Positions 1-64,000 of a stretch of 64,000 nucleotides of DNA are shown here, piece by piece. This DNA comes from Takakia lepidozioides (lineage: Eukaryota > Plantae > Bryophyta), in NCBI GenBank assembly GCA_030704615.1, contig CM060731.1, positions 50,654,001 through 50,718,000 on the forward strand. The letters are read 5' to 3'. A model generated the notes under the pieces. The model was not told where the DNA came from, did no database searches, and was given only the letters and a program-made list of their open reading frames with translations. The position numbers were made by a program, and so were the translations under genes. Every line of letters begins with the position of its first letter. The stretch's first letter is position 1.

Positions 1-3000
1 ATAGGAAGGAACTCTCTGCCAGCCAGGTACCAGTAGGGATGGATGGATCTGGCTCGGGGTTCATGTCTTTCGTGGGGGAGCTCCAGCAGCAGACCCTTAT
101 CGGTGTATGAGCAAATAGTGGAATTCGTATTGAGTCTCTACTTTGAAGGGACATGATCATTGTTATAGGGTTAATGTGGAATAGGAATCCAACGAAGCAG
201 TCATGTAGCCTGTCCTAGATAAATAATACTGTCAGTTTGCTATTCGTAATCCCTAGAGACCAGAAGTTAGTGTTGGGTTTAACATGACCTGCTTGAAGAG
301 TTGGGATCTAGGCAGAGGGGATGGAGTCTTTAACGATTTGGTAACCATGATATAGTCTGGCCCTTCCTACTTTGAGAACTAAGTGTTCGGGCTCATGAAA
401 GCCCCGGCTGTTCCATAAATCATTAATTTGGCTGATACCCTTCCTGTCCCAGAAAGACCAGCGATGCGCCTGCGATTTTTGCGTGAGAGAGGGGGGGTTG
501 TCATTCAGGAAGATGTGTTGTCTCAATATTTCCTCATGGCTCTGTGGTTCCGATTTTTTGAGGAAGGGTCTCAATCTCCCCTAGGCTTGTCATATAGAAG
601 ACCATAGAGATGATCCATGCGATTTAAGTCTGAAGCCTTGAGACACCCATCTAAAAGAGGGGTTCCACTGGGAATTTTTGAGGGGGGACGAAGCCTGAAT
701 GTGTCCTGCCACCAAGAATTTCCACCAACCCCCCTCCGGACCGAAGAATCTGGGCAACCATTTACCTAGCAGTGCTGATATTTGCGTGTCCGGGTCTATA
801 AGGCCTAGCCCCCCCCATTTTTTTGGGGAGACAGATCTGCTTCCACGATACCTGCGGTCTTTTGCGATTCGAGGAGCTAGTTTGTGCTCCCCAAACAAAG
901 TTCCTGAGAAAAGCTCTGATCTGTTTGGTTTGTGAAGAGTTGGGCCTCCAAGAGGATGAGAAGAACCAAATCCCTGCCGAGTGGATCTGATTTACTGCTA
1001 GCACCCTACCAGTTATTGAAAGGTGTTTGGAACCCCAGAAGGTGAGTTTTTTTTTCAATTTCGCAATAGTGGGCGCGAAGCGTTGCTCATCCGTGAGGTT
1101 CACTTCATAAGTATAGCCCAGGTAGATCGTTGACTGACCAGGTCTCAACCATGAGAGGCCCAGATTTGATCCCCAGGTGGGGTCTGTCCCTATCGTGGAT
1201 TTGGACAGATCCCCGGCCAGGATTGCACAAGTCTTGGCCCAATTAACCTTAAAACCGGAAGCCTAACAGAACGAGTCCAGTGTTTGCGAGGTGTTGTGAA
1301 GGTTTTCCGAGGAAGCTTGCAGCATGAGAAGAGTGTCGTCCACAAACATCGAGTCTTTGACTTGCGCTGGCTGGTTGGTATGATAATTGGAGACTTGAAG
1401 GCCTACAATGTCTGTGTTGTTTTCTAGCATGTATCCCAGGGAATCTGCGACGAAAAGAAATAGGAATGGAGCTAGGGGGCAGCCTTGCCTGACAGATATC
1501 TGAAGGGGGAATGGTTCAGAGAGCTGGCCATTAATCATGACCCTACTAGATGAGTTCTGCAAAAGAATGCTAACCCACTGGCATAACGATTCTGGAAGAC
1601 CGACCTTAGTTAGGGTTCCTAGTAAGAACGACCATTCCACCCTATCGAAAGCCTTTTCAAAATCAAGAAGCAGCAAAGCTATAGCTTGCTCGGTTTGTAG
1701 GGCATAGTGTGGAGCTTCCTGGGCTAGAAGAAGATTGTCCATAATGTAGCAACCTTTTATGAATCCTATCTGGTTGGGCCTAATCAATTTAGGAAGTAGG
1801 GGTTGTAGTCTTAGAGCCAAAGCTTTGGCAATGATCTTATAGGCTACGTTTAAAAGGGTGATAGGTCTGTAGTTAGATATGTTCGTGCGGTCTCCTTTTT
1901 TGAAGAGCAGTGTTACCACTCGTTGAGACATAGAGGCGGGCATTCGCGCTATCAGGAAGATATGATTCGCCATGGAGAGGAAATCTTTTGAGATATCCTT
2001 CCAGAGAGCCTTGTAAAACTCCACAGGCATTCCGTCCAGTCTCGGAGATTTGCCGTTATGCAACTTGGAGAGAGCATTCTCGAGCTCCATGTCTGTGAAT
2101 GGGCCTTCCATGGAGGCAGCTAGCTCCTGGGTGAGCAATGTTGGAGTGGATTGAAGGCAGTGATTCTGATGGGGAGATGTTGCAGTGTGACCTCCGGAGA
2201 GACTGCTAAATAAGGATTCAAAGTGTTTGCCTGCTAAGCTTGCCATGTGTTTGGGAGAAGAGGCGGATATACCCGAAGGCTGGTCAATCAGTTCAGTGAT
2301 GTTTTGAGAAGCTCTACGCAGCTTGGATTTTTCGAAGAAATATTTGGTCATCTTTTCCCCTTTTGTAGACCAGTTTATGCCTGCTTGAAGTTTGAGTTTT
2401 TGTTCATGGGTAGACTGAAGAATCTCAAGGTTTTCCTTGGCTTGGAGGTAGGTCATGTATGTGTGCTCATCACATCTACTGGATTCTACTCTAGATTGAC
2501 ATGCCGAAAGACATTTATGAAGGGCCTTGATTTTGCAGGAACGGGCTTGGGCCAAGCTTTTGCTCATGGATTGGGCTTTATTGCAGGCGGCTTTGAGTTT
2601 AGCTTCAAACTTGGAGGATGGGTCAATCGCTGTTTCACCCCCTTCATTCCAAGCTTGAAGAAGGCCTTGTTTGAAAGAGGTTAGTTTTAACAGGGAGGAG
2701 TTCAGCTTGAACAAGCCTCTCCCCCTGGATTGAGTATTTGGGATTTTGATTGTTGCCGATATCAGAGCGTGATCAAAGCCCTGTTGGATCGGAATCTGGG
2801 GGATTCTAGAAATCCACTGAACAAGGTTGAGTGACGTATAAAATCTATCCAATCTAGCCATTTGAAGGTGAGGGAGAGATCTATTATTGGTCCAGGTAAA
2901 GGATGGAAGGGTAGGGCTTGTCCCATAGGACTGAGTGATGGCTTCTGTGAGGTTGTGGTTCTGAGTGAGAGTGTTCCAGGAATCTATCTCTATTGAGGAG

Positions 3001-3260
3001 GGGTTTACTGCTGATGGACCTCTACGATCACGAAGATCCTCCACCATGTTGAAGTCTCCCATTAATATCCAGCTGTCTATGTTTGGAGCATATTTCATTT
3101 TGCTGTCTATGGCGGTCCAGAAATCTGCCCTGTCTATGGTGGAGTTCGGAGCGTAAATGTTGACTATTCTGAAATGACTTGGGCATGAACTTTTCCTCTT
3201 AAGCTTACATCCTGTATAAAAGTCCTGTGGGCTCAGAAAAACTGGGTGGGTCAGTGTTTT
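1..3260 (-). mobile_element. Decayed L1/Tx1-type LINE ORF2 (AP endonuclease + reverse transcriptase), running off the left edge
   Basis: ORF 1263..3341 has endonuclease motifs (VNIYAPN, MGDFN, RLDRFY, DH) and RT motifs (YRPITLLN, LDFEKAFDRVEW, RQGCPLAP, FVDD). It continues past a stop and frameshifts in ORFs 762..1148, 590..898 (KKWGGLGLID) and 308..574. The 5' boundary is uncertain. Confidence 0.92.
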
Positions 3261-4807
3261 ATGGGCCCCTTGCAAAGAAAAGCCACCTATAGTCAGACGG
3301 GTCGTTTTCCCTGTACATCTGGATTGAGAGCCACCGCACAAATATCATGCTGCCGACCGATGCACTGTTCCATTCATCATGCCGTGCGCTCACATCCAAC
3401 ACTCTGCATACATCTACCACCCATACGCCCACTTCCCTTCGTTTTCAAGGGCGACAGGATTTGAACTGGCGACCTCGGGGAGGGAGTCAGCAAACGCCCT
3501 CTGCTATCTAGCCAGTTGAGGTGATTGAAAGCGGCAAAGCCCGACACGCATTTGTAGCCTACATACAGGGATACGGGCATATATCCCGAGATATGAATCC
3601 CGATACTAGGGGGTATTAGCGGACCGAGCGTGAAGAAGACGCCACGCTTCAGCCGCACGATGGAATGATCTGACGGTGATGATGCGGTTCCCGTCCACCT
3701 ACTTCGGCTAATTCAGGCGATCCCAAATCACGGGTTTAAGGGATATCTCGGGGGGATTTGGGGGATTTGATAGCCCTTGCCTTCCGGAGCCTGTCGCTCT
3801 AGCTCTATAGCGATGGCGAGGGCTTTTGCTCTCCAGGCTGAGCGTCTGCATGTCTTTGCACGATTTTCGTCTCAGGATTCGCTGTCTCGGTGGGATTGAA
3901 CGAAATCTGCTCAATTATCCCTTTGATTGCCTTCACCAGGTTTTCGGTTTCTTCAACCATGTGTCGACGCGCATTGCTGTTTCCTTTGTCATCGATTGAC
4001 TAGTGGGAGTGGTCTGGTGTCTCGCTTTGTTTTTTGAAGTCCGAGACAGTGGGATGAGTAGATCTCCGTCTCTCATTATCTCTCTAGGAGTTTCTGCGAT
4101 TTTTCCTCTTGATCAGGGGCCTTTGGAGGATTTTTGACACCTGTGGAATTGTTGCTTTTACTGCACGAGTTTTAGCAACACCTACGCCTCTCTGTAGAAT
4201 CTTCCTCCGAATCATCCCCCACTCACACTCACACGCAGATTACCTCCCCTCGTTCATCACCGCGAGGAGGTTCGCAGTTATCTGCTGTGTGAATCTCACT
4301 CCCTTTTCTCTGTTTTTGTCTCTCTCGTCCCGTCCTCTGGAAATCTCTTATCTCATCTTGTTCTGTTACAGGCGACAGAAGTGTCTTCAATACAAATGTA
4401 TCTGTTTTGTCTAGTTCATTTAATTACCTTCTCCACGGGTCTTCTTGTCCACTCCATGCCCTCAGGGGGTCTTGCTCCCATCCCTGGCCTGCCCTGCTGT
4501 CACCAATACGTCTTGTTGTAATTGCTACCGCAACATTGAGATAGGAATGTATCGCCTGTTTCTCCCTTTCTTTCATACTTTGCCCCTAATTGAAAGCTAA
4601 AGTAATTCCCAGTGCATGGAGTACACAGAGCTGTTGTTAGCTTCAAATAGTCCGCATGAGTCACCGGCTCTTAAACCCTATAATCAAGTGGAAATGAGTC
4701 ATGCAAGTGACACAGACAGTTCCTTAAAGTAGAGACAATGCATGGTTGAAAGTGAGGACATTCGCAAACAGATACTGGGACTTCAAGCAGAGATTGTACA
4801 GAATATC

Positions 4808-32621: not shown

Positions 32622-33053
32622 ACACGAAGTTGGATTCAAACAGAAAGAAAATTCAAACGTGCTCTCCCTTTGTGCGACCAGACCTTCCACGCCATCGCTC
32701 AGCCCTGCTCCTGTTCTCACTGCGCTTGCTGCAGACATGCTTCTCTGCGATGGCAGCAAGGATTGAAGGAAGGAAGGGAGGAAGATAGGAGTTTGTGAGC
32801 AGAGATGAGACAGGGTGCAGACAAGCATGGGGGCGCAGGCTTGGCTGCAGATCGCACAAGGAAAGTATGGAGCTTACATCACCGTCACGGAATGTCTAAT
32901 CAGGTCGTGGAACAATCACGGGGAACAGAGATGACAGCGGTGGAGATTAGTATGTAGGTGTTAGTGTGTGCATGGGGGCGGAGATGAGACAAGGGAGGAA
33001 GAAGGGATTTCAGAGCTAGAGTGGAACGCAGGGGGGGCAGGTGAGTGGAGACG

Positions 33054-35082
33054 ATGGTAAGGGAGACGAATGTGGGAGTTTTTTATGAGAAGCTCCAGCA
33101 GGCGGCGGTTGCCGCCAGTGGAACCCCTCTGCTCATCTTCCCCTCGGCCTGTGACACGGATTCCTTGTGTGCCATGAAAATTCTGCACAGTTTGTTAGTT
33201 ATGGATTCTATACGTTACTCCATGTATCCCGTGGCCAGGGTTGGTGATATTCAGAGCGTGGCATGCCGATCTTTGAGTGCGACTGACCAGGCAGTGGTAA
33301 TTCTGTTGATCAATTGGGGGGTCTCCTGTAATCTGCATAGGCTGCTCAAACTGGGCCCGCAAGCAAGGGTGTTTGTGGTGGATAGCCACCGTCCCATCCA
33401 TTTGCACAATTTGAGTGACGCGAACCAGCAGGTGACTGTGCTCTTCACCCATGAAGATGAGCTGCAGGCCGACATGTCCCACAGCTCGATCTTGAAGAGG
33501 CTGTCAAGTTTCGCCGACACCTATTCTTCGGAGGAGCAAGATGTTGACAACAGTAAGAGTGACGATGAGTCAGATGAGGATGATTACAGAGATGAAGACG
33601 ATGACGGGGAAGCACCGAAAGTGAAACGCAGGAGAAAGGAAGGGGTGGGTGACCGAAAGGAGGAGCAAATGCTGAAGGCCGAATACTACAGGATGGGATG
33701 CTTTCATGGGCGGCCGGCTGGTTGTCTCATGTTTGACATGGCCCACGCCTTGCACAGGAACAAAAACGAGTTGCTCTGGCTTGCTTGTGTCTCCCTCACC
33801 GATCAGTTCGTTCATGAAAGGCTTACCAAGGAGAGATACACGGTAACTCAGGGGGAGCTCGAAAGGCATGTGACCAGCGCTGGCAATCTGGAGAGAGTTA
33901 CTTCTGTTACCTTGAAGGATGGTACAAAAGTGAGGGCACCGGATGTATCAAGAATTGTTTTTGATGTTGAACCCCGTCTGATGCTGCTGAGAGAGTGGAG
34001 TCTGTACGAGGCTATGCAATGTTCCCTTTACGTGGCACCCAAGCTGAAGACCTGGGGTGATCAAGGCTTACGCAAAATGAAGCTCTTACTTGCGAGGATG
34101 GGCATCCCACTCACAGAATGCCAACAGAGGTTCAAATACATGAAAAGCGAAACGAAGAAGAGGCTCGAGACACAGTTCGAGCAATTCGAGTCCGAGTCTG
34201 GTCTTACAGAGCTTTACTTCCGAAACTTCCATAGGCACCACGGATACAACGACCGAGTATCTGCTGCTGATGTTGTCTATGGAGTGACAGCCCTGCTGGA
34301 GACACCAGGTGTGAATGGAGAAGGTGATTGCACTGACAACTTTTGGGCGGCATACGAAGCTCTCTCCACTGATAAATGGGAGGAATTGCGAGCAGGGATG
34401 CAGCTGGCGATCAAGGTCCAACGTGCCTGTCTCCGCCTCGGAAGTGCTGCCATTGTCAAGAGTGGCGCCATCGGCATGTGCCGGGCATTCAGGTAAGCAA
34501 ATTTGGTCCTTCATTTATTGATACTGCCTCCTGAGATAGCAAAGAAGTAGACCTAATCCTAAGTAGAAAAAGTAGAAACTGTTCGGTTAAGTGCGTGGCA
34601 GGTTTTCAAATTTTACTGTTGATTTCCCCCTCCACAGGTCACCGCAGAAATCTGAACTCACACTTTGGCATTACCTATGAAGCTGATGACTTCTGACGTT
34701 GATAGCATTATTTGATTTGTCCAGGTATCACAAGCTTCCCGACAGCCCAGACTCACAGCTGCTGGCACATCCTCTCTCCCTCACAAAATTCTGCTATTTT
34801 CTCATGGATTCACTGCAGGAGCAAGGCCGCCGAGCATTGCCCATAGTTTGTGTAGCACCCATCCCTGGACCTGCAAATATGGCTCTAGTTGTTGGAGTCA
34901 CCCACCGGCCTCGCTTAGGAGCTGCAAATGGGAACAAGTTTGGCTTAGTGTTTCGTGCAACTGCAGAAAAGTTAGGAGCCAATTACAGTCACGATGCCTT
35001 TGAGTCTTCATGGATACATTTGGATGGAGCTGCTGTTAGCTCCTTCTTGAAGGAGTTGTGTAATACCTACAGTCCGCATTGA
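33054..35082 (+). CDS. CDC45: Cell division control protein 45 (CMG helicase component), 2 exons
   Basis: DTDSLCA, FVVDSHRPIHLHNL, acidic loop, LLWLACVSLTDQFVHERL, EPRLMLLREWSLYEAM, VSAADVVYGVTALLE. Exons 33054-34492 and 34725-35082 join in frame. Confidence 0.96.
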
Positions 35083-47788: not shown

Positions 47789-48455
47789 ATGCTAAAGCAA
47801 ATCTCTCATTTGCAACAGGGCGAGTTGGAGGGATCGGTGCGAGGACCAGATTTCAAGCAAAACAGTGCCAACAAGGCACTGATGATTGATGCCTACAAGG
47901 AATCTCCATGGGTGGATAGTCAACAGGAAGCAGGGGCAGGCCGATCTTTTGAATCGGGTGGAACGACTGCCATTGAAAGAAGACCAAGAGATGGAGTCCA
48001 CCAGAGCTCTTCTGGCACTTACGGGGATGTGAGGACACTATGTAAGTCAGAGAAACTTAAAGATGCATTGTACATTTTGAACCAAAGGGGCTTTACGGCA
48101 GATTGCAATACTTATGTCTGTCTCTTTGCAGGCATGCATCAGGAGAAAAGGCCTAGCAGAAGGAAAGCAGGTGCAGGCCCACATTATCCAAAGCAGATTT
48201 AGGTCAAACATCTTTCTACTCAATATCCTTGTTAGCATCGAAGATGCACGCTTAGTGTTTGACAAAATGCGTGAACGAGATATGTGGACATGGAATGTAA
48301 TGGTGGCGGGATATGCCAAGCATGGGTGTGGTAGGGAGGCTTTGGAGACCTATGAGCAAATGATATGGGGAGGGGTGACACCCAACCAGGCCACGTTCTC
48401 TTGCGTTCTGAAGGCTTGTTCCAGCCTGGGTGACCTGGAGAAAGTGTGTGTATGA
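47789..48455 (+). pseudogene. PLS-class PPR gene fragment
   Basis: LQAC...EGKQV, EDARLVFDKM.ERD..TWN.MV.GYA.HG.G.EAL, TF..VLKAC. Frameshift near 48120, the MY.KCG segment is missing, and it stops early. Confidence 0.85.
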
Positions 48456-51208: not shown

Positions 51209-52570
51209 TGTTAGAAGGATTAGTAAATCCAATGTAGGTTAGTAAGTCTAGTAAGATGAATAGTTAGTGAAGAGAAGTTACGTTCCCTGGAACGTTCACT
51301 GGAACCTTCATGTAACTGCTGAGCTCGGGGGTGAAGCACTTCTGAGTGACTTCTAAGGAACTCATTCAAATATATAAAGTCTTATTCTTATATTGCTGAG
51401 TGTATCTGATTAGAACTTTAACATGGTATCAGAAGTAGGTAATTAGAAATTACTCATAGATTTTCATTATCTCGTTGAACATGGGTCTCTTTTGTAGAGC
51501 GCCCAGGACGTCAATGAGATATCAGATGAATAAAGCAGATTTTCGCAAGTTTAAGATTCTATTGACATAGATTAATATTGCAGTATCCTGGCAATGGCAG
51601 ATCAAACTAGGAACATCGAGAAATTAGATGGGCCTAATTTTTCCACATGGAAAATCAGGATGTCTTATCTGTTTAAAAAGGAAAAACTATGGGATTTGGT
51701 AATAGGTACTGAAGTTAAGCCTACTAGTACTAATCTCCCGGGGGTACAGGAATAAATGCTCTCTACGTAAAAAATCTGTTAACTTTATTATGAATGAAGG
51801 TGGTGATGTCCTCACCCCACATTCATGAATTTAAGTTACTCATTGAGTAATTGGCTTCGTTGGGGGTTACCTATAATGATGAAGATAATGTATAAACTCT
51901 CATAGGGAGTCTCCCTGATTCGCTTGATACAGTCGTCATGACTCTAGAGAACACCATAGGATTGACTTTTCAAGACGTGTCAGCCCGATTAATGCAAGAA
52001 AATATGCGCCGAAATAAATCTCAGAATTTCACAGACAATGGGGGCTCCACAGCATTGTGTGTTGGCAGAAGATCCCAACAAAAGGGTCAATCAATAAAAC
52101 CTCCGGGTGCAGATCGCAGAGGTGAAAATTGTAGTGTTGGATCCATGGGTTCACAATTAAGATCCAACAGTAATCCGGCCAGATCTCACCAGAAACTTGG
52201 AGTTTGATGTAATTATTGCAAATAGTACAATCACATTAAAACAAACTGTAGAAAGTACTTGCGCGATATTAAATCAGGGAAAGTCAAAGTTGGTCATAAT
52301 ATATCTATGACATTTGTATCAAGTGCAGACGATTCGTGGTTCCTAGACTCAGGAGCTCTGACTCCTCATCGAGATTGGTTTATTAATTATGAATCATATT
52401 TGACAAATTCTTGGAGATAATTTCTCATAGTCAAGGCAATGTTGCCATCCATTTATATAATGGGGACGTGAAAATGCTGCAGAAAACACTCCATGTTCCA
52501 GGTCTTCGCCATAATCTAATTTTTGTGCACAAAGTTGTTGCTGCTGGGTATACAATTAAATTCACCAATA
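51209..52570 (+). mobile_element. Ty1/Copia remnant: 5' LTR, PBS, decayed gag-protease
   Basis: LTR TGTTA...TAACA at 51209-51423; PBS TGGTATCAGA (tRNA-iMet type) at 51424; gag MADQTRNIEKLDGPNFSTWKIRM; knuckle CNYCK*YNHIKTNC; protease WFLDSGA. It has stops and deletions and is truncated before integrase. Confidence 0.9.
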
Positions 52571-53485
52571 TGTCGGTGACGGACATTCTTTTAGTGGCGG
52601 ATAATCTCCAAATTTCGACCTCGCGTGGGTATTGGCGACATGGGCAAAGGGAAATGAGTCTGAAAAATGCAAACTTTATGCCAAAAATTGATTTGGTGGG
52701 CCCACCATTCGCCATAGGGGCCGTAAGAGGGAGGCACATGGCGCCATATTGAATGAAGGCAATTTACAATAGAGGAGCCAGATCCCACCGACCACCACCT
52801 GCATGACATCGCCCGTTTGGAGTGGGCGGGAAGACGTGGAGGCAGCTATGCTGCCCATTTTTCTATATATATATATAAAGTATGACGCCTCCTTAAGGGA
52901 GCGTAACAAGGGCTACTACCTTCCAGCTGAAAGGTGGACACGTTATATATATGTATATATATTGGTAAATATAGTCTGGACTCTGTACAGATACACTTTG
53001 TAGTGATAAATTAGCAACATGTATATGGGAAGCTTAGCGGTAGAGAATTCCCTAGGTAGCCATATGGTGTTCAATTCCTAACACCTCCGTACTTTTTTCG
53101 ATAGTAACCTGGTTTGGATGATAAAGTTCCTAAATATGAAAAAGGTGGCCGCGGAGGAGGGCAAAAGGTGACTGTAGAGGAGGATGATAATCAAAAGGGT
53201 GGTAGAGGTTTACAAAAATAGAATGAGAATGTCACTTATTCATTTTTTTGGATTGCCATAATTTTTGCCCAGTCTCCATGTTGAGAGCATCCAATTTGCT
53301 ATGTCAATTGTGGGCAAGTCTAATAGGTTTTAGGTTCATTCGCCCAACACCCATTCAAAATCTCATATTATCGCCAGCAATTTCAACTATATATTTTGTC
53401 CAAGCGCCATATGTGCTCCTCTAAGGTTCTCCATATGTGCTCCTCTAAGGTTCTCATGGATGCCACTTTGCTACAATGTAAATAC

Positions 53486-53724
53486 CAGTGTTGGGCGGTT
53501 ACCCGCCTGGCCCCGGGTAACCGCCGGTTCCGGTTCCGGTTATGTGGAACCGGACCAGAACCGGACCCGCCTGTGCAGAACCGGAACCGGAACCGGAACC
53601 GGAAATTGGGGATTGTGTGGGAACCGGAACCGGCGGTTCCAGCTACGACCACATGTGTGGGAACCGGGTTTGGGGTTTAGGGTTCCGGTTTCGGTTCCGG
53701 TTCCACCCGTGGGCTGTAGCCCTA
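53486..53724. mobile_element. Small element with GGAACC/GGTTCC subterminal repeats (hAT MITE-like)
   Basis: Begins CAGTGTT and ends GCCCTA, with many (GAACCG)n and (CGGTTC)n units; no 8-bp TSD found. Confidence 0.5.
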
Positions 53725-53740
53725 AGTGTCTCTAGTCTCT

Positions 53741-56246
53741 ACGTGCGCGGTTCATGATGCGGCGATGCGGAAGGTAATCGGCCACGCCGTAGTGCTGCAA
53801 TATGCGGTTGTCCCAGAAGGCCACATCATTGGCTTGCCATCTCCATCTCACTGTGAATTCGGGCTTTGTAGCATGCGCAAACAGAAATCCCAGCAATGCA
53901 TCGCTCTCGTCCTTTTACAGATCCACAATGCGGGTCAGGAATCCTTGGCTCAGGAAGAGAGCCTTGCGCCCACTGTCAGGATGAGTGCGGATGAGAGGGT
54001 GCACCACTGGCGGGTGCTCTTTCACAGCTTCCTCCCACAGCGCCTTGGGGTCCCCTCGACCTTCGTAGTGGTACCGGGGCTGCGAGAATGACTTGACAAA
54101 GCTATGCTCTGCTTTTAGCCCAAGAAGAAATTGTTGCAATGGGCTTTGAGAGCGCCTCGAAGGCTGCAATGCCGATTGCATCGCAGGCAGGTGATCTCTT
54201 GTTCGCTTCGTAGTGCTGCAACACTCTGTCAAGCACAGTTTTGTGGAAGTCCGTTGTCTTCTAATCTGTCTGCTTCTTTATGCCGTCTTCATGGGCTCCC
54301 TTTGTGCCCTCTCCTTTACTGGTCTGCCTCTCGTTCTCTCTTCTGTTTGTCTTCTTCTCTTTTACCTTTGCGCGGATCCGCTGGGGAACGAGCTGGGAAC
54401 AGCTCGATGTATAACTCATTAGAGTTATGTTGTCAAACTCATGGCAACTGCCTTCTTGAATTGTGACGCTGATCGCACGCCCTGAAGCCAAACATGAACT
54501 ACCAATGTAGCTCAGAGATAGCAATTTCCGCCTTTGCCCCTACGATTGTAATATCTTGGGTGAGACGAGTGCTTTGGAGTTTTAGAATGCCCTCTCCTTC
54601 CAGCTTATTTTGTTACTCAGTATAGTTATATGCAGAAGTGAAAGACATTGCAATTACATTTTTGAATTCCTACGTCGATCAAGCGCCCTGAAGTTCGATA
54701 CAGCCAATTCCCCTCGTGTCCCTACGATTGTAGCATCTTCGGCGAGCTTTGTATTTCCAGGTAGTTCTGTAATATATTTGTATGCAGCCAAGAAGTAATA
54801 CACTTTGCAAATACCTTCTCAAATTTTTACCGTTTGATCAAGTGCCTGAAGCCAAACATGAACTGCACATAGTGGCTCAGATATAGTGAAGTCTCCCTCT
54901 GTCCGATTGGAACAACTTGGGTGTGACAGGAAATGTGCCTCCTTGTTCCGAGCTCTGGATTTTCCTGTGCCCTCTCCTTTCTAGATATATGTTTTCTTCT
55001 TTTTCTCTTCTGTGATCTATTGTGTATTCCAAGATAGCCAATATTTCATAGAGGTCTTCCATTACGAGGATCAGAAATGCTTGGCAGCATATCTACAAAA
55101 GTCCTTGACTCTTAGACAATCCCTTGATTATCAGTTGTTTTTCAGTTGCTTGTTGAGGGCCCCACTCCCTTTCTTGTTTCATTCTTTCTCTAGTCCCTTC
55201 AGTTCTTTGGGATTTCAATAGAAAGTATCATTTCATTTCTCTTTCTTTCAAATATATCTCGCCTCAGGAAGCTTTTACATCTCTATCAATCAGTCTTTCA
55301 ACAGCCTTGGCTTCTATTTGGGGGGTTCTACAAAGAAGCAGCTGGCATCTGTAAATCTTAAGTTGGCCTTCTTTGTCTATTGTATGAGCTCTTTACCTGC
55401 ACATGATTGTGTATACGTGAGAGCTAGAAAGAAAATGAGCAGGTGAAAGGGATGATGCATGCTCGTCCCCATCCTTATAACTGGTAGCGTTTAAGCTTGT
55501 AGTGATGTGTGGCAAGCATGTGTTGTTTCTTGCACAGAGAACCTGTCTTTCTCACCTCCTATGTAGTTTCCTGGATGGCCTAGACCACAATGTCAACCTC
55601 TTAATTAGTGGAATTCTGGTGCTTATCAGGGCAAGAAATTCTCAGATCAGTATGCTCAGATCTGAAACAGTTGCAAAGATGGTATGGCTGCAGAGATCGG
55701 GATAGGGTCGACAACAGCACCTAAGAGGAGGCTCTGTCTGCAAGTTTGAACAGAACCCAGGACTGGAGTTGAATGTGCAAAGTGTCACAGGTGAAATGGG
55801 AATTGCCGGGGATCACTGAAATTGCTCTTTAAGTTCATCCATCTGTACTTCAAGAACGAGGGAAACAGGGTATCACCACCCACGGGAGGTATGAGCTTGC
55901 CGCTCAGGATTGTGCCCAAGGGCAGTGTCTCAATGAAAGTGACGTCGGTGTGCCACTTATCATTGTCTGGGGGGTGATCACCGTCAGAATCCAGTACCAT
56001 GATTTCCTCTAACTCGGGGCCTAAGTTTGGGTAGATTGGATGTATGTGCAAATCACCGAAACGCTTGGCGAAGGCGTGCTGTTGGTGTGGAGTGATCGGC
56101 TGGTTGCGGAAGAAGAGCACCTGATACTGAAGTAAGGTGTCGTTGATGGCTGCCTGCTCTGCATCCTGCAACGGTTCCGCCAGAGAAATACCTTCGACCA
56201 CGGCGCCGATGGCCCTCGTGAGTGGAGTGATTTGCAGAGTACTCAT
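53741..56246 (-). pseudogene. tauD: Bacterial-type taurine/2-oxoglutarate dioxygenase, intronless, split by a ~1.68 kb insertion
   Basis: 5' half 56246-55863: FGDLHIHPIYP, PPDNDKWHTDVTFIET, GGDTL. 3' half 54179-53741: [56 protein letters not shown]. Frameshift near 54141, in-frame TAA at 53915-53917, last residues missing. Confidence 0.93.
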
Positions 56247-57126
56247 GGATCCAGTAAACTTGTTGTTACTGAAGCTCTGACAATAAGGTGTAAGCCTTCA
56301 AGGCTGTAGTGTCCAATTGCTCTTGGGCACCTGCATCATAACACGAAAGATCAATGCGCTTACCCATGTGTTGTTCAGAACGAGGGCCCTAGGAGTAATT
56401 TGCTTATCTAGAGCGAGCAGCAAGACAAGTGTATTGACTCAGACAGCGCAAGTGCAGAATGGCCCACATCGAGTCACCTAGACAATATATTGGAGCAACG
56501 AAGAAATAGACCAACAACTGTTGCTGCTCCCCGAAGATCAAATCGGTTGTACAGTGAGATAGATTCTGCAGGTTTGCACCTCGCGCTGTAGTTGGTCAAC
56601 AAATTTGCCACTTTGAAAATTGTGGGGCTTAAATCTCTCCAAGGGAAGGTCAACGCGTACACCATACTTCTACCTCAATTGCAGCGCCATCATCAGCACT
56701 TTCCATAGTGGAAATCAAAACTTGCTCTCTTGGTACCACTCGAACATCATTCTCGTATAGCTGAATATCAAACATGCAATTAGACCCTGGCAGTCCCACG
56801 ACCATCAACTGAGACTTTTTGCTTCTGTGCTAGCTACATAATCTAGATGAATTCAGACCAACCGAGAAGAATTAACCCAGAAAGAGGTCAGCTCTCTGCC
56901 CCTCTCTTGTACAGTGCTTAGTTGTACAATCTGGATGACAGCCAGGCTAGCTTTGGATGACCAATTTGTACTTTTGCAGCACATAATGGATAGCAAGTTG
57001 GTTGGGGCGTAATGACAGTAGGTTGCTTCCTTGCCTCAGTGTCTATTGCCATGATCAATGTTGTTCATCGTGCAACAGAGATTTATACAGAACCTCGGCG
57101 CCTGACTGTTCCTGTATATGTGGCAG

Positions 57127-58131
57127 GTGCACACATACTTTCGGGAAATGTGTTTGAACCACGGGCACTCAGTGAGCTCCTTCCAGATTGGAAGGATCAA
57201 GGCGTATGTCCTCAGTCCATACTTATGAAAACTGGATGATGCAAGAGAGGTAGATGGCTTGGGGAGTGACTGTCTTCCGTTCATGATGTTATTCAGCTGG
57301 AAATGGATTGATTGCTGATGAGTGCTAATCAATTGAGACACATCCGTTCATGATAATTTGATAATAGCAGATTATCGCTGATGAGGATTGGTTGAAGGAT
57401 ATCAATTGGATCTTTTGACACAGGCTCCACTGCGTGTGCCAGTTGTGGAAGACAAGTTTTGGATGTTATTTGAGAAACGAGCACTGCCACTCCCATCTCC
57501 CTTCAACAACAATAGTAACTTTGTTATTAGGTCAGCTTCTACTCTCCTACTCCGGCTTGAGTGCAATATTTTTGTTTTCTCCACATATTCAACTTTGTGG
57601 AAATTATGCTGCTACTTTCCAATGCATAACAGGTATTGAAGTGTACAGAGAGACGGGGAAGAGACAGTTGCATGCAGGAAACTAGCATACTAAAGTCTTC
57701 CACCATGATTCAGTGGGCCACCAAATCCCAGGAAGCTTGGTAAATCCTAAACCCTCGATTGGAACAAACACTTGTGCTTAACCACAGAGACAAAGGCAAG
57801 GGGTATTATTCTATGTGAGAGCCAGCTATTTGGCAATGCTTGTTGAAGCCTTCCATAACCATGTGCTATGCTTTGAATAGCTTGAGTGAGCTGGTGCGGT
57901 GGCTAGGAGGGAAAGCAGAGAAACTTGGGGTTGAAATTTACCCAGGTTTTGCAGCGAGTGAGGTAACCCCCTTTTCTTTTGTTCACCATTCTATGGGTTA
58001 TTGTATTGGCAGAATTGATTTGCACCAAATTAGAGGGGTCTCCGCACTGTTCATTTCCAAGAAGTTCTATTGTGGGATGGTAGGATAGCTGCAGGTGGAG
58101 CTGAATAAGGTGCTTATGCAGGTTTTGTACA
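57127..58131 (+). pseudogene. ETFQO: Intron-containing internal fragment of ETF:ubiquinone oxidoreductase
   Basis: Exons 57127-57203 (GAHILSGNVFEPRAL), 57424-57530 and 57881-57962 (SLSELVRWLGGKAE.LGVEIYPGFAASE), plus the start of a fourth (VLY) at 58122. No N- or C-terminal exons nearby. Confidence 0.9.
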
Positions 58132-59041
58132 AGGGTGTTCCTTTTTTCGCTGTGTGTCAGGGAATCTTGAACAATGTTGACTGGCAAGAGAAGGTATGTG
58201 AGCAGCCATCCCCCTGTCTCTTCCATCCTCTCCTTTAGGGGCTCTCTCGTTCATAGTTTCTGGCTACTCCACGTGGCACTGCATTCTAGCTGTCTTCACT
58301 TGAAAGTCAACCTGGTCTTGGTTGTCAGTGATTTAGTCATCCAGTCGTCTCCAAGTGTTGTTCAGCTACTGAAGAGGGCTTTTCAAAAGAGAATGATCTA
58401 AGCAATCGAGTGGATATCAATGCTGTAGCAAGTAGAGTTAGTGACGTTGGTAAGCATCCACCACTTTTGGTTATTTTACTGTTTTTAGCTTTAGTTCACC
58501 ATGAAGCTAATCAGCTTCCTCCTTTTCTGCTATGGCATGTGGTGCAAGAGGTAAGGAGGACGAGTAAGGAGGGCCCACCTGCAACCAGGCCCCTTGGTCC
58601 ATGGTAATCATTGATCATCATTCTTCTTCTTTTTTTTTTTTTTTTTCCTGTTTTCTTTTATGATATACCAAGGGGCTGATAGCCCTTGCTCCACTATGGT
58701 AGATTTTACATTGGAGGGAGCACAAGCAAAGAGGGGCCCGCCAACCAGCCCACATTGATCATCACTGGTAAGTATCTTCCCTTTCTTTAAATTTTTTTTA
58801 TTCTTGATACAATTGGGGGTTGATGAGATAGCCCCTTTGGCTTCTGTTATAGCAGATTCTGCATGAGAGGGAGGGAGCCCAATGTAGGGAGGGACCTGCC
58901 AACCAGCCACCATTACCCGCTTGTAACTCCCTTTCATTGAGCTTTATTTTTTTAGTTGTTTACATTTTTAGTTGTAAATATATGAGTTGTGCACAATTAT
59001 TAAATGCCTTTTGGATTCTTTGTTTGCATTGTTTTTACACA

Positions 59042-60252
59042 GGAGTTGTTCCACAAGCTTTTTATGTCATGGAGCCCAATATTTTTGATGAACTAGAAAG
59101 GGAAGTTGTTCCTGACATCAATGTTGATAATGAGAGAGCTTTGGTGGAGTGCCATGTTGCGGAGGATGCTCATCATGAAGCCTCATTTACATCAGCTCAT
59201 CAACCCTCGGCTGCAACGTCATCTTCCACAATTTCGCCATCACACACGGTGTTGGATGTGGAGGCGCAGCTCCCAGTACTTGACAAACAACGGGATTTTT
59301 GGAAACCCCACAATCGCACTGCTTCGACATGGGCATTCTATGCAACAAAAGACTCTGCTCCAGTGGACATAACAAATCCACAACAAATGAGGTGTGTTCT
59401 ATGTCATCCTGTTGGTGTCACTCCTGCAAGCAAGAAGGGCATTGTGACCTATAATAAAACCAATGGTATCTCTGCCATTCGAAAGCATGTGGATCAAGAA
59501 CATGACATTGTTTTGCGTAGGTGGATTGAGAGGGAAAATGAAGGACCTGAGAAGGCCCGTAGGCCAGCCAAAAAGAGGCCCGGTCCCACTCCTGGAAACA
59601 TAGTTTTTTTTTTAGGAGCTCCACTCCATACAACCAAAATGATGATCAACAGAAGCAGTTCAATGAGGATTTAGTCTTATTCATTGCAAAGGAGTTGGTT
59701 CCACTGTCTTTGGTAGAATCCCCTTGGCTAAGAAGGATGGTGTTGAGGCAAAATCCTCGGATTGTTTTCCCTTCTCGACGGACATTTGTGAATGAGGCCA
59801 TTCCAATCTTGGCAGAGAAGACGAAAGAGCGCTACATGTCCCCATCTCTTCAGAGTTGTGCTACTTGCTCCGTGAGTTTTGATTTGTGGATGTCAAGAGG
59901 GGGAACTGACACTTTTGTCATCATAGCGCACTTTATTAATGAACAGTGGGAGCAATGTCATGTGACTCTTGGCCTGTTTGAGACACCTGACACATCTGGG
60001 GCTGCCATGGCACATCAAGTCAACAATCTTCATGTGAAGTATGGCCTCAATACTCGCATTATTGCTTACGTCAAAGATGAGGGAGGTAACTTGGCCACTT
60101 TGACCAATGCTTTGAATTCGGTGGTCTCATGTGCGTGTTTGGGGTTGGATTCTCCATTTGTGGGTAGCTGTTTTGGGCATGCAATGTCCAAGTGTTGCCA
60201 GTATGCAACAAATGATGCAAAAGTATGCGCAGATATGAGATCGGTTTCTATA
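59042..60252 (+). mobile_element. hAT transposase remnant (BED-like finger plus N-terminal catalytic part)
   Basis: W.FY...CVLC...HVDQEH, PLSLVESPWLRR, FPSRRT, SFDLWMS. Frameshift in the T run near 59604-59613; truncated at ~60252. Confidence 0.85.
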
Positions 60253-60559
60253 AGCACGAATGAGTTTAATATAATAGCTTGTAAGAAAACATTCATGACA
60301 TTCATCATTTTCATAACAGTCATGGAGTATTATCATTCATTCATCTCATAGAAAGTGAATACATAAGCCAATTCTGCAAAACAATCATTGATCTCATTCA
60401 AAAAAGTGTTTCCAGTATCAAACACTAAGCCAGATACAAGTCGACCTAGTTGGAACATGAACATGCATTGAAAAACAAGATTGAGAAGAAATCCTCATTG
60501 CAAAATAACATTGATCTCATTCAAAAATGCATCCTTGAAGCAAACGTACCCATCTCCAA

Positions 60560-63500
60560 AGTCCGATACACCCAGATTTGAGTAACAATGACAAGGAGGG
60601 CAAATGGGTAGAGTTGTAATGCAAATCCAAACTACATCTCAATTTGTACCCGAAGTATCTCGTTGTAGCAGTGTCTGGGTCCAATTGTACATTGGTGAAT
60701 GTACGTATCTCGTTTTGGATCACAAAACATTCTCCGAATATAGATGTAGTACAACTGCTTGCACGGGACAAATTTTACTCTCTTGCCAAGAGAACTTGAG
60801 AGCGTGTTCTAACAGTCCGGACAAGTGCAATTAGGGAAATCGCCAATAGTAATCTCATAGGTCCGGTCATGAACAACTGATCCAGAGGTTGCCATGGTAT
60901 ACACCCGACCATACCCTAACAAGGGAACATTCATAATTTGGGTGACGCAACACTATATGGTATGGTTCTGGCAGACTCCATCTTGCACTCATTGTTTGCA
61001 CCAGCCTCAACCAAACATACCGCTTTTCCATCCTTTTTTGTGGGCCTATCATTGCCCTGTCGAGGACGTGCCGTAAAGTTGGAAGGGAAAGCCATTGGGT
61101 CAACTGGTGTTACGACAGGAGGGGCTCTCGGAAGGCGAAACCTGGCCTCCTCCAGCATGTCAATCTCCAGTTTGGAGAGTGTGGTTCCAAACTTCACTGG
61201 CCACACGGCTGGAATTTGAGGCTTCATTATCACAGATTCCCGAACAGTCCCTATGACACAACGCACAATGTCATCCGGGCAGAACCAAAACTTGTGAGGC
61301 CTAGACTCCCGCGACTGGTAATGCTTGAACAACCCGGTGAATGTCGGGGCTGGAGTTCCGCAAGTCACTTTGGAAGGGACTTGCACTTCTGGAACGAGGG
61401 GGCCCTAATAGCGGCACATTTGACTTTTGATCCATGGGGAGTCCGTTCGATATGCCACATTGCGTCTGTACAGTCTGACTCCTCTACCGGCACTACTACG
61501 TTTGGTGGGGGGGGGTTTAGCGATGCCCCAGTGACCTCCAATCGCCGCGATTAGCGACGGAAATACTCTACAGCGCCCGGGGCGCGTCGGGGGCATTTTG
61601 CGACGTCGGGAAGTCACAGAGACGTCGCTCCCGGAATGTCGCTAATTAGCGTCGTCGGGGAATCGCAAACCCCTCGGGACCCACCCGGTCGCGGCGCCGG
61701 CGCGACTTGCGACGTCCGGGCATCGCAAAAAATAAAATAAATAATAATAATAATAATAATAATTCTGCGACGTCGCATTAAGGACGTCCGGGGGTCGTAA
61801 ATGCGACCCCTAGACGTCACAGTACGGGGTACATTTGAATTTAGTTGGGAAAATTTTGAATTTGAATTTTGAATTTCAAAAACTAGTTGACCATTGACTC
61901 AGCGTTGACAATTGACTCCGGTTTTGTCCAATGGCAGTTCATGCATTGTTCTACATATATTAGGCAATGCATATTTGAACCTAGGACCTCCACATTATAA
62001 CACTTCTAAGACACTGCACACTAACTAACAAATCTACAATACATCTATGTATCACAAAAGCAGTCCAAGTATATATATACATATCAAGAGTTAGTTCCTA
62101 GTGACTACCACTATCTAAATCCTATCATTGTGTTGCATATTATGCGTACTCTACAGGAGCTCTCTCAGCTAGAACTTGCACCGAGACTTGTCCCCAGAGT
62201 TCTTCAAGAACAAATATCTATCAATGGCCTAAGTTTTGCAAAGTTGCATTGCAACTTATTGTTGGACAATAACTATAGTCTAAGGATGCCAAGCCCATTA
62301 TGCTCTACAATCTACTCCCATAATCAATTTTCTGCGACACCCCCAGGACGTCGAGGAATCAGAGCGCCGCAACCCTAGCGACGGCCGGGCGCTTTTGCGG
62401 TGGCGGGGAATTTTTAAAGAAAAAAAAACGGGTTTTTTTTTTCGGGCATTGTGATTCCCCGCCGTCGCAAAAGCGTCGCCGAGCTGCGGCGCTGCGACAT
62501 CTCGTTTCGATTCCCCGGCGTCGCAAAAAATTGTTGCGACGCAGTGGCATCGCAACCCCCCCAGTGCGTTGGCGGGGGAATGGGGTCAGGCCCCTTTCCG
62601 GCGACGCATGGCATCGCAAGATGCCACAACGTTGTCCGAGCGCCAGCGTTACGACGCCCCGACGTCGCAAGTCCCGAGCCGGGCGCCTATGCGACGCTAC
62701 AGTTGCAAGGTGGTCGGCGCGTCTGGCGCGCCCGAGGTCTTGGCGTCGCTAACCCCCCCTAAGCGTAGTAGTGCGGCAACATGTTCTTCTCTTCACTGGG
62801 AACTATGATGGTTAGAGACTCCTGAGGAAACGAAGGCAAAGAAGACTCCCCCACAAAGGGAGTGACACCCACGAAAGTGGGGGGCACAGGCACACGTGGT
62901 ACTGAAAAAGTTCTCCCAATCGTGGCGGTGCGAATCTGCATCCGAGCCTGGTGGGGTGTCAAGTTTTCTTTTGCACAAACCAAACCTCTCCTCTCCTTCC
63001 AGATGTACAAGCCGTGACTGCAATGGTGTTCCCATTGTGCACTCGTTCACAGCCCGTGCCATCTTAGTAGGGTCTTTCAATCTGTTTGCAGCCCTTAGCA
63101 GCAACTCTGCCCTGTTTGGCCCCTTGCCTGTACCCTGTCCCCGAAGGAAATCCCGGTACCGTGTTTGTATCAGCTGTGGCAATGTACAGATCCCGCCCGT
63201 TCTTCCCGGATTGCTTCATCCAAACACTATGCACTGTCTCCGAAAGATTGCCAGAGGGCATGTCCGCAATATCCTCAAGCGTCATATCCTGCCAGCCACT
63301 AGATTATGCAATGAGTTTCATGTTTTGAGTGCAGTTTTACTGGACAAGAGCAGGCTTCAAACTGAAGGAACAAAACCCTCTAACTCTTGGAACTTACTGT
63401 TGTTATGAAACCCCCCCCACTGTCTGTATCGGAAATGCCAAAACCCAAACCAGTCGTCCAGCTCTTTGAGGTCTTCCTGGCTTGATGCATTCGAGGAGTA

Positions 63501-64000
63501 CCACCATGCTCGGATAGTTTGATACAGGGAGTTTGTACAAGCGGCATAGTCTCATGTGCTCGTCCTGCAATTCCACTTTTATGCAACTCTTTAAATGCCT
63601 TCGAAGGGACTGCGTCCAATGAAAGAGACAAGTGTGCTCCCTACCTTCCATAGGTGTTTTGGGGTCTCCAGATCCAAACACACACCGTACTACATTCCAG
63701 TTTGCCTGGGCGCTGTCAGCCATGAATCCATTGAAGTTTGGATCAGGCACACCATTCAAATTCATGACGTTCACAAGAGACCTCCACATCAGAATTTGAG
63801 ATTGTGTGTCCTTGGATTGCATGTCGCAAACGGTTATAGTCATTGCTCTTTGGTAAGTGGGATCATACACATGACAAGCCATGGTTGTCCACTCTTTAAC
63901 ACGTTTGACATGGTCGAACATGAGCCACGATTTCTGCAAATCGCCTCCAGGTTGCATTCTTCGGACCGGGCTAGCTCCACTACCCTCCCCCACCGTGGAC
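60560..64000 (-). mobile_element. Decayed MULE-like transposase gene with SWIM-type finger, interrupted by a CACTA element
   Basis: MFDHVKRV, GFMADSAQANWN and CLFHW resemble MULE DDE/CxxH motifs; NCTCPDC...PCKQLYY near 60740-60830 is SWIM-like. Multiple frameshifts; runs off the right edge. Confidence 0.65.
61491..62773. mobile_element. Non-autonomous CACTA (En/Spm) element, 1283 bp
   Basis: Termini CACTACTACG...CGTAGTAGTG; 3-bp TSD CGG at 61488-61490 and 62774-62776; GC-rich GCGAC/GTCGC subterminal repeats around an AT-rich centre. Confidence 0.93.

Follow-up and report, generated by a model that had tools for sequence, protein, structure and literature searches.

A broken taurine dioxygenase gene in Takakia lepidozioides, probably a recently inactivated duplicate within a land-plant family of ancient bacterial origin

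We analyzed a stretch of 64,000 nt from Takakia lepidozioides (assembly GCA_030704615.1, contig CM060731.1, positions 50,654,001-50,718,000, forward strand), hereafter the window, which carries on its minus strand the remnant of a gene for taurine dioxygenase, TauD. Two pieces at 55863-56246 and 53744-54179 together correspond to residues 1-273 of a TauD of approximately 281 residues. A first-pass annotation, made without database searches, had described the copy as disabled and its two halves as joining seamlessly. Both descriptions hold: the reading ...ggt ggt gat acc ctg ttt ends at 55863 and gca atc ggc resumes at 54179, so that GGDTLF continues directly into AIGIAAFEALS. We also compared 5,001 letters of the window (52500-57500) with public sequencing runs and found the locus in four of them, belonging to three studies. 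Runs X1 and X2 come from one sample, X5 is from a separate study and is labelled as a plant metagenome, and X6 is taken as RNA by a tool's guess only. The gene pieces, their lesions and the immediately adjoining repeat are as follows.

55863-56246, minus strand: TauD codons 1-128 (MSTLQITPLT...GGDTLF), open, with its own ATG at 56246; Pfam TauD E 9.8e-26, NF007104 175.1 bits.
54180-55862, no strand assigned: non-coding block of 1,683 nt splitting the gene between F128 and A129.
54142-54179, minus strand: TauD codons 129-141 (AIGIAAFEALSKP), up to the frameshift.
54141, minus strand: extra C in a run of C, shifting the frame; one letter left out here at full depth in X1, X2, X5 and X6.
53918-54136, minus strand: TauD codons ~143-215 (QQFLLGLKAEH...TRIVDL); Pfam TauD E 4.1e-09, NF007104 79.9 bits.
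53915-53917, minus strand: in-frame TAA stop; X1, X2, X5 and X6 all show 53917 A>G at full depth.
53744-53914, minus strand: TauD codons ~217-273 (KDESDALL...RRIMNRA); Pfam TauD E 8.4e-14, NF007104 89.7 bits.
53483-53736, no strand assigned: end of a high-copy repeat that carries GGAACC/CCGGTT motifs, directly next to the truncated 3' end of TauD; summed depth up to 49,836 versus ~400 for single-copy sequence.

With the block, the frameshift, the TAA and the 3' truncation all present, the window contains no open reading frame able to encode the enzyme, and its TauD is a pseudogene member of the TauD family. The truncation falls at 53744, where the final 8 codons are gone and a tail of RRD and a stop takes their place. 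At the other end the copy includes 86 nt or more of sequence ahead of the ATG.

The pieces were searched separately, not as a joined protein, and in alignments they form one row with an X at each break. The three open pieces all exceed the Pfam TauD (PF02668) cut-off and align to profile positions 1-133, 143-207 and 217-266. For NF007104, the NCBIfam taurine dioxygenase equivalog, the rough sum over the pieces is 345 bits versus a cut-off of 313 bits, while six plant proteins scanned with the same profile reach 420-440 bits. These scores of the plant orthologues bear out the earlier view that the gene is a proteobacterial-type TauD proper and not a clavaminate-synthase-like protein. Aligned to E. 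coli-type TauD, the window copy keeps the Fe triad H99, D101 and H255 and the 2-oxoglutarate contacts T126 and R266, as do the plant orthologues. The taurine contacts H70, Y73, N95, S158, F159, F206 and R270 are likewise all kept, S158 and F206 being variable in some orthologues. Every Fe, 2-oxoglutarate and taurine contact that the first-pass annotation had listed from E. coli TauD was thus found by alignment. The family product is predicted to be an Fe(II)/2-oxoglutarate taurine dioxygenase which would release sulfite from taurine-type sulfonates. In the literature we found no paper on a plant or bryophyte TauD and no assay of a plant enzyme of this family.

The closest relatives of the window copy are plant proteins. 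Searched against 1.84 billion representative proteins, the N-terminal piece has one match at 85% identity, Ceratodon purpureus M758_6G134800, and no other above 67%. This piece is 85-86% identical to two Ceratodon TauD proteins, the second being M758_6G135000, and the piece with codons ~143-215 is 82% identical to Ceratodon. Further relatives are two proteins of the lycophyte Diphasiastrum complanatum (72-74% identical to the window copy), two of the liverwort Calypogeia fissa (70%, N-terminal piece) and four other sequences. The named plant relatives sit on plant contigs of 11-63 Mb. Among 5.8 billion proteins, 185,579 species genomes and JGI metagenomes, the closest bacterium is Chitinimonas, at 66% to Ceratodon TauD over its whole length and 70% to the N-terminal piece from the window; TauD proteins of Enterobacterales show 60-64% identity. 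A scan of JGI metagenomes for further copies returned nothing above 61% identity, presumably bacterial.

The two Ceratodon genes (6G134800 and 6G135000) lie close together on chromosome CM026439.1. Diphasiastrum and Calypogeia also have two TauD genes each, pointing to recurrent duplication across lineages.

We placed the window copy in a maximum-likelihood tree of 51 rows (LG+C20+F+G4), with more distant TauD-like proteins as outgroup; fifteen long-branched outgroup rows were omitted, and a quick tree including them agrees. Hornworts, ferns, seed plants and algae were not deliberately included in the sampling. Plant TauD forms a single clade (ultrafast bootstrap 96, Shimodaira-Hasegawa-like approximate likelihood ratio test 91), in which branching roughly tracks the plant lineages. 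The moss sequences form a clade of their own (100/99), which includes the window copy, placed weakly as sister to the rest. As to the host, the tree would point to a moss, possibly an early-diverging one. A clade of Chitinimonas, Silvimonas and Rhodocyclaceae, a clade of Gammaproteobacteria and Burkholderiales and the plant clade meet in a three-way fork, all of them within bacterial TauD. No donor can be named from such a fork.

These results bear directly on the proposal of the first-pass annotation that the gene was a candidate horizontal transfer. A transfer is suggested by the single plant clade nested in proteobacterial TauD, although it would be an ancient one and not one into this plant. 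The expectation that the copy itself would group inside bacteria failed: it groups with a vertically inherited land-plant clade, which was one of two outcomes that the annotation had set against its own proposal. A recent bacterial transfer into this plant, with a copy now decaying, would agree with the proteobacterial type of the protein, the intronless coding sequence and the higher GC content of the TauD pieces relative to their flanks. However, the best bacterial sequences are more distant than the moss (66-70% versus 85% identity), the plant sequences form one clade and the gene is not missing from related plants. The window and Ceratodon coding sequences also differ by a synonymous divergence (dS) of 0.66-0.90 with a nonsynonymous to synonymous ratio (dN/dS) of 0.09 (NG86) to 0.13 (YN00). 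GC content at third codon positions is host-like, at 0.63 in the window TauD compared to 0.60 in the CDC45 reading frame of the same window and 0.62 in Ceratodon TauD, and the GC island is merely coding sequence standing against repeat DNA. Since Ceratodon TauD is itself one uninterrupted reading frame of 843 nt, an intronless coding sequence is the norm in this family and the absence of introns is uninformative on how the window copy arose. We regard a recent transfer as very improbable. A dN/dS of approximately 0.1 further indicates that nearly all of the divergence accumulated under constraint and that the copy was inactivated recently.

The sequencing runs separate older lesions from those found only in the window. 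Without the extra C at 54141 the frame reads ALSKPLQQFLLGLKAEH, matching the orthologues, and this letter is missing from all four runs, which restores the orthologue-like ALSKPLQQFLLGL. The TAA codon at 53915-53917 is CAA in the same four runs, encoding Gln, the orthologous residue. Both the stop and the frameshift are therefore private to the window in this comparison. In the window copy, moreover, L replaces the conserved P of IETPP and T replaces the A of INDALL, where the runs keep the conserved residue. All five coding substitutions of the window TauD, including the stop, are C-to-T or G-to-A changes; the frameshift is not of this kind. Only two lesions are common to the runs, namely the block (X1, X2 and X5) and the 3' truncation, across which an X5 contig reads. 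Over the whole 5,001 letters the window mostly shows A/T where the four runs show G/C, and X1 differs from it by 18 A>G and 13 T>C changes among approximately 54 differences. This excess of A/T could stem either from mutation of the deamination type in the assembled individual or from systematic consensus error in the assembly.

Run X6 carries a different form of the gene. Its depth is ~62x over the gene parts, whereas most of the block has no depth and only two short segments of it are covered. A contig of 1,413 nt from this run joins 54179 to 55863 exactly, without the block, the stop or the frameshift, and confirms the seamless join. It extends 86 nt upstream of the ATG and 509 nt beyond 53745, where it reads ...NRATILGDKPF followed by a stop. 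This is a full C-terminus different from that of the window, and a 30-letter stretch of the X6 continuation past 53745 is absent from the window. The predicted length of the intact gene is 281 codons plus a stop, or 846 nt. The X6 form is ~99% identical to the window locus, and the only differences private to it are at 53785 and 56166. These findings establish that an uninterrupted TauD copy exists in the same species, as had been surmised from the window, and this copy is apparently expressed.

The joined form was also detected as a minor component of DNA run X1, at ~59x versus ~400x for the interrupted form, or ~13% of total depth, a figure that should not be taken as an allele share since read contigs do not give such shares reliably. 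The two forms share flanking words in this run. One simple possibility is that the window holds the ordinary TauD locus, that the block is an insertion polymorphism and that the assembled individual carries a knocked-out allele. The near identity of the X6 contig, with its shared 86 nt of 5' flank and two private differences, would fit this explanation, as would the restriction of the stop and frameshift to the window. Yet the block is present in three runs from two studies (X1, X2 and X5), the junction of the 3' truncation recurs in X5, and the X6 contig continues differently from 53745 onward. The locus also lacks synteny with Ceratodon, only TauD itself matching between the two neighborhoods, and lies in repeat-rich DNA beside a transposase remnant. 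We therefore consider a polymorphic allele unlikely, while taking it as the most serious competitor to an inactivated duplicate.

Another way to obtain a duplicate is reverse transcription of a TauD mRNA. The coding part is intronless and, together with the 86-nt leader, ~99% identical to the RNA-like X6 contig, as would be expected of a processed retrocopy. However, the Ceratodon coding sequence is itself intronless, and the window copy has no 3' untranslated region, poly(A) tail or target duplication and ends 8 codons early. A processed retrocopy thus appears highly improbable.

The block between the two halves of the gene is poorer in GC (43%) than the gene pieces (54-55%). Read on the strand of the gene, it has the ends CC..AT, or TC..GA if shifted by one ambiguous base. 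A spliceosomal intron was rejected because these ends are not GT-AG, GC-AG or AT-AC. A Helitron-like element, considered because one phasing of the block starts with TC after A, was dropped in the absence of a CTRR end and a 3' hairpin. We found no terminal inverted repeats at the block and no target duplication beyond the one ambiguous base, and blastn revealed no second copy of it in the window. Degenerate tandem units of ~182 nt occupy 54430-54930. In the reads, a core of 35 nt at 55054-55088 is present at ~90x the single-copy depth, its other copies diverging on both sides, and 55768-55862, the block's first 95 nt, turn up again at the end of a 2,214-nt X6 contig of unrelated sequence. Such a mosaic would resemble filler DNA or a composite non-autonomous element more than a clean transposon. 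The exact join in the RNA-like run, together with the ~13% of depth in DNA run X1, also allows for exact removal of the block, either because the DNA is excised in some cells or plants, or because RNA is processed non-canonically at the CC..AT ends. This is very unlikely, but if true the interrupted locus would still yield a TauD message wherever the stop and frameshift are lacking.

The surroundings of the gene are eukaryotic and plant-like. Other features of the window are listed here.

1263-3341, minus strand: long interspersed nuclear element (LINE), an open reading frame of 692 codons with endonuclease/exonuclease/phosphatase and reverse transcriptase domains.
33045-34496, plus strand: CDC45 open reading frame, 483 codons uninterrupted, covering profile positions 3-507 of 624.
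48114-48455, plus strand: fragment of a PPR-repeat open reading frame, downstream of the TauD locus.
52411-52752, plus strand: Copia-type Pol beta-barrel fragment, downstream of the TauD locus.
58937-60351, plus strand: hAT/ZBED-type transposase remnant of two adjacent open reading frames separated by a stop, divergent from TauD and 2.7 kb upstream of its start.

The best match of the CDC45 reading frame is 71% identical, with named land plants at 57-59%; this intron-free frame may be a retrocopy. A reading frame of 196 codons on the minus strand, 63403-63993, runs to the window's end and has no family match; its text may be transposase-like.

The linkage of TauD to this plant sequence does not depend on the assembly. 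The X5 contigs span 53635-53877, 53848-54278 and 55912-56867, and thereby bridge the 3' junction, the gene-block boundary at 54179/54180 and the gene start into its 5' flank. Only X5 has a contig bridging 54179/54180; in X1 and X2 the block is covered by contigs as far as either edge, and depth in both runs is even over the whole stretch compared. Bacterial contamination or a chimeric assembly, for which nothing speaks beyond the bacterial look of the gene, is effectively ruled out by contigs that, in an independent sample, tie the gene to the block and to its flanks on both sides, the more so given the relatives on large plant contigs. The plant nuclear setting proposed in the first-pass annotation is thus confirmed.

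The gene lies between a high-copy repeat and a transposase remnant. The repeat at its truncated 3' end has a sharp boundary, with loose ends at 53734-53736, and is present in about 100 or more copies. Its GGAACC/CCGGTT motif matches 8 times in 53524-53704 and 9 times in the window as a whole, in both orientations, where 0.08 matches would be expected window-wide. Taken as element ends, neither end of the repeat has a partner in the window. On the 5' side, the first reading frame of the transposase remnant shows a CxxC...HxxxxH BED-like zinc-finger motif in its sequence, and homologues of the second at E 1e-60 carry PF27041 (ZBED1_RNase-like). The remnant has an atlas score of 0.95 to RICESLEEPER-like clusters. 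Neither reading frame matched the Pfam library searched or PDB sequences, no C-terminal dimerisation domain was found downstream of the remnant, and Pfam gave no match for ten open reading frames between TauD and the transposase. With this remnant lying 2.7 kb upstream, we would give roughly even odds that a hAT transposon duplicated TauD.

Taken together, we consider the locus to be a recently inactivated duplicate of a nuclear TauD of land plants, a family acquired by ancient transfer from bacteria and then inherited vertically, with a probability of roughly 80%. A beta- or gamma-proteobacterial TauD would have entered an early ancestor of land plants, and mosses, liverworts and lycophytes would have kept it since by vertical descent under purifying selection; we infer both the direction and the age of this transfer. 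The gene would have been duplicated in this species, the window copy possibly being moved by a transposon. This copy would then have been split by the 1,683-nt mosaic block and have lost its last 8 codons at the high-copy repeat. In the assembled individual it would in addition have gained the stop, the frameshift and two damaging substitutions.

Several observations weigh against this account. The uninterrupted form is ~99% identical to the window locus even in the 86 nt of 5' flank, and its ~59x versus ~400x in X1 is more readily explained by an insertion polymorphism at a single locus than by a paralogue that is fixed and single-copy. X6, in which the uninterrupted form is best seen, counts as RNA by the tool's guess alone. 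A search of the window for terminal inverted repeats with an 8-bp target duplication around TauD plus the transposase found none; it used a 9-nt seed and allowed at most 1 mismatch in the duplication, and one end could lie outside the window. Finally, the tree does not order the three branches of the fork between the plant clade and the bacterial clades.

Taurine dioxygenase is otherwise a bacterial and fungal enzyme that scavenges sulfur from sulfonates, and bryophytes live on a dilute, deposition-fed nutrient supply. A true TauD that purifying selection has preserved in mosses, liverworts and lycophytes, and that is annotated only as a hypothetical protein, would make a plant-encoded route from sulfonate to sulfite a testable addition to plant sulfur nutrition. 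The family would also clearly merit a place in lists of genes that land plants received long ago from bacteria. If hAT transposons copied TauD, the locus could illustrate, on a small scale, how a mobile element multiplies a gene that was once foreign. The window copy itself is an ordinary pseudogene, and the family is of moderate interest, resting on genes already in public databases.

Compared to known systems, the locus resembles hAT Pack-type elements in having part of a host gene only 2.7 kb away from a hAT-type transposase remnant in repeat-rich DNA, and differs from them in that the window revealed neither element ends nor an 8-bp target duplication. The TauD proteins of Chitinimonas, Silvimonas and Enterobacterales are the closest bacterial sequences (58-66%) and neighbors of the plant clade in the tree, yet they are too distant for a recent donor. 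The TauD genes of Ceratodon, Diphasiastrum and Calypogeia belong to the same clade as the window copy and share its length and intronless coding sequence, with Ceratodon 85-86% identical. Those genes are intact (and annotated as "hypothetical protein" in Ceratodon), whereas the window copy is interrupted, truncated, out of frame and set among other neighbors. The Ceratodon orthologue aligns over its full length with E. coli TauD (PDB 1GQW, 1OS7) at E 1e-112 and ~60% identity. In contrast to the E. coli gene, the plant copy is nuclear-encoded and the window copy is broken at four places, and mosses have F in place of W128.

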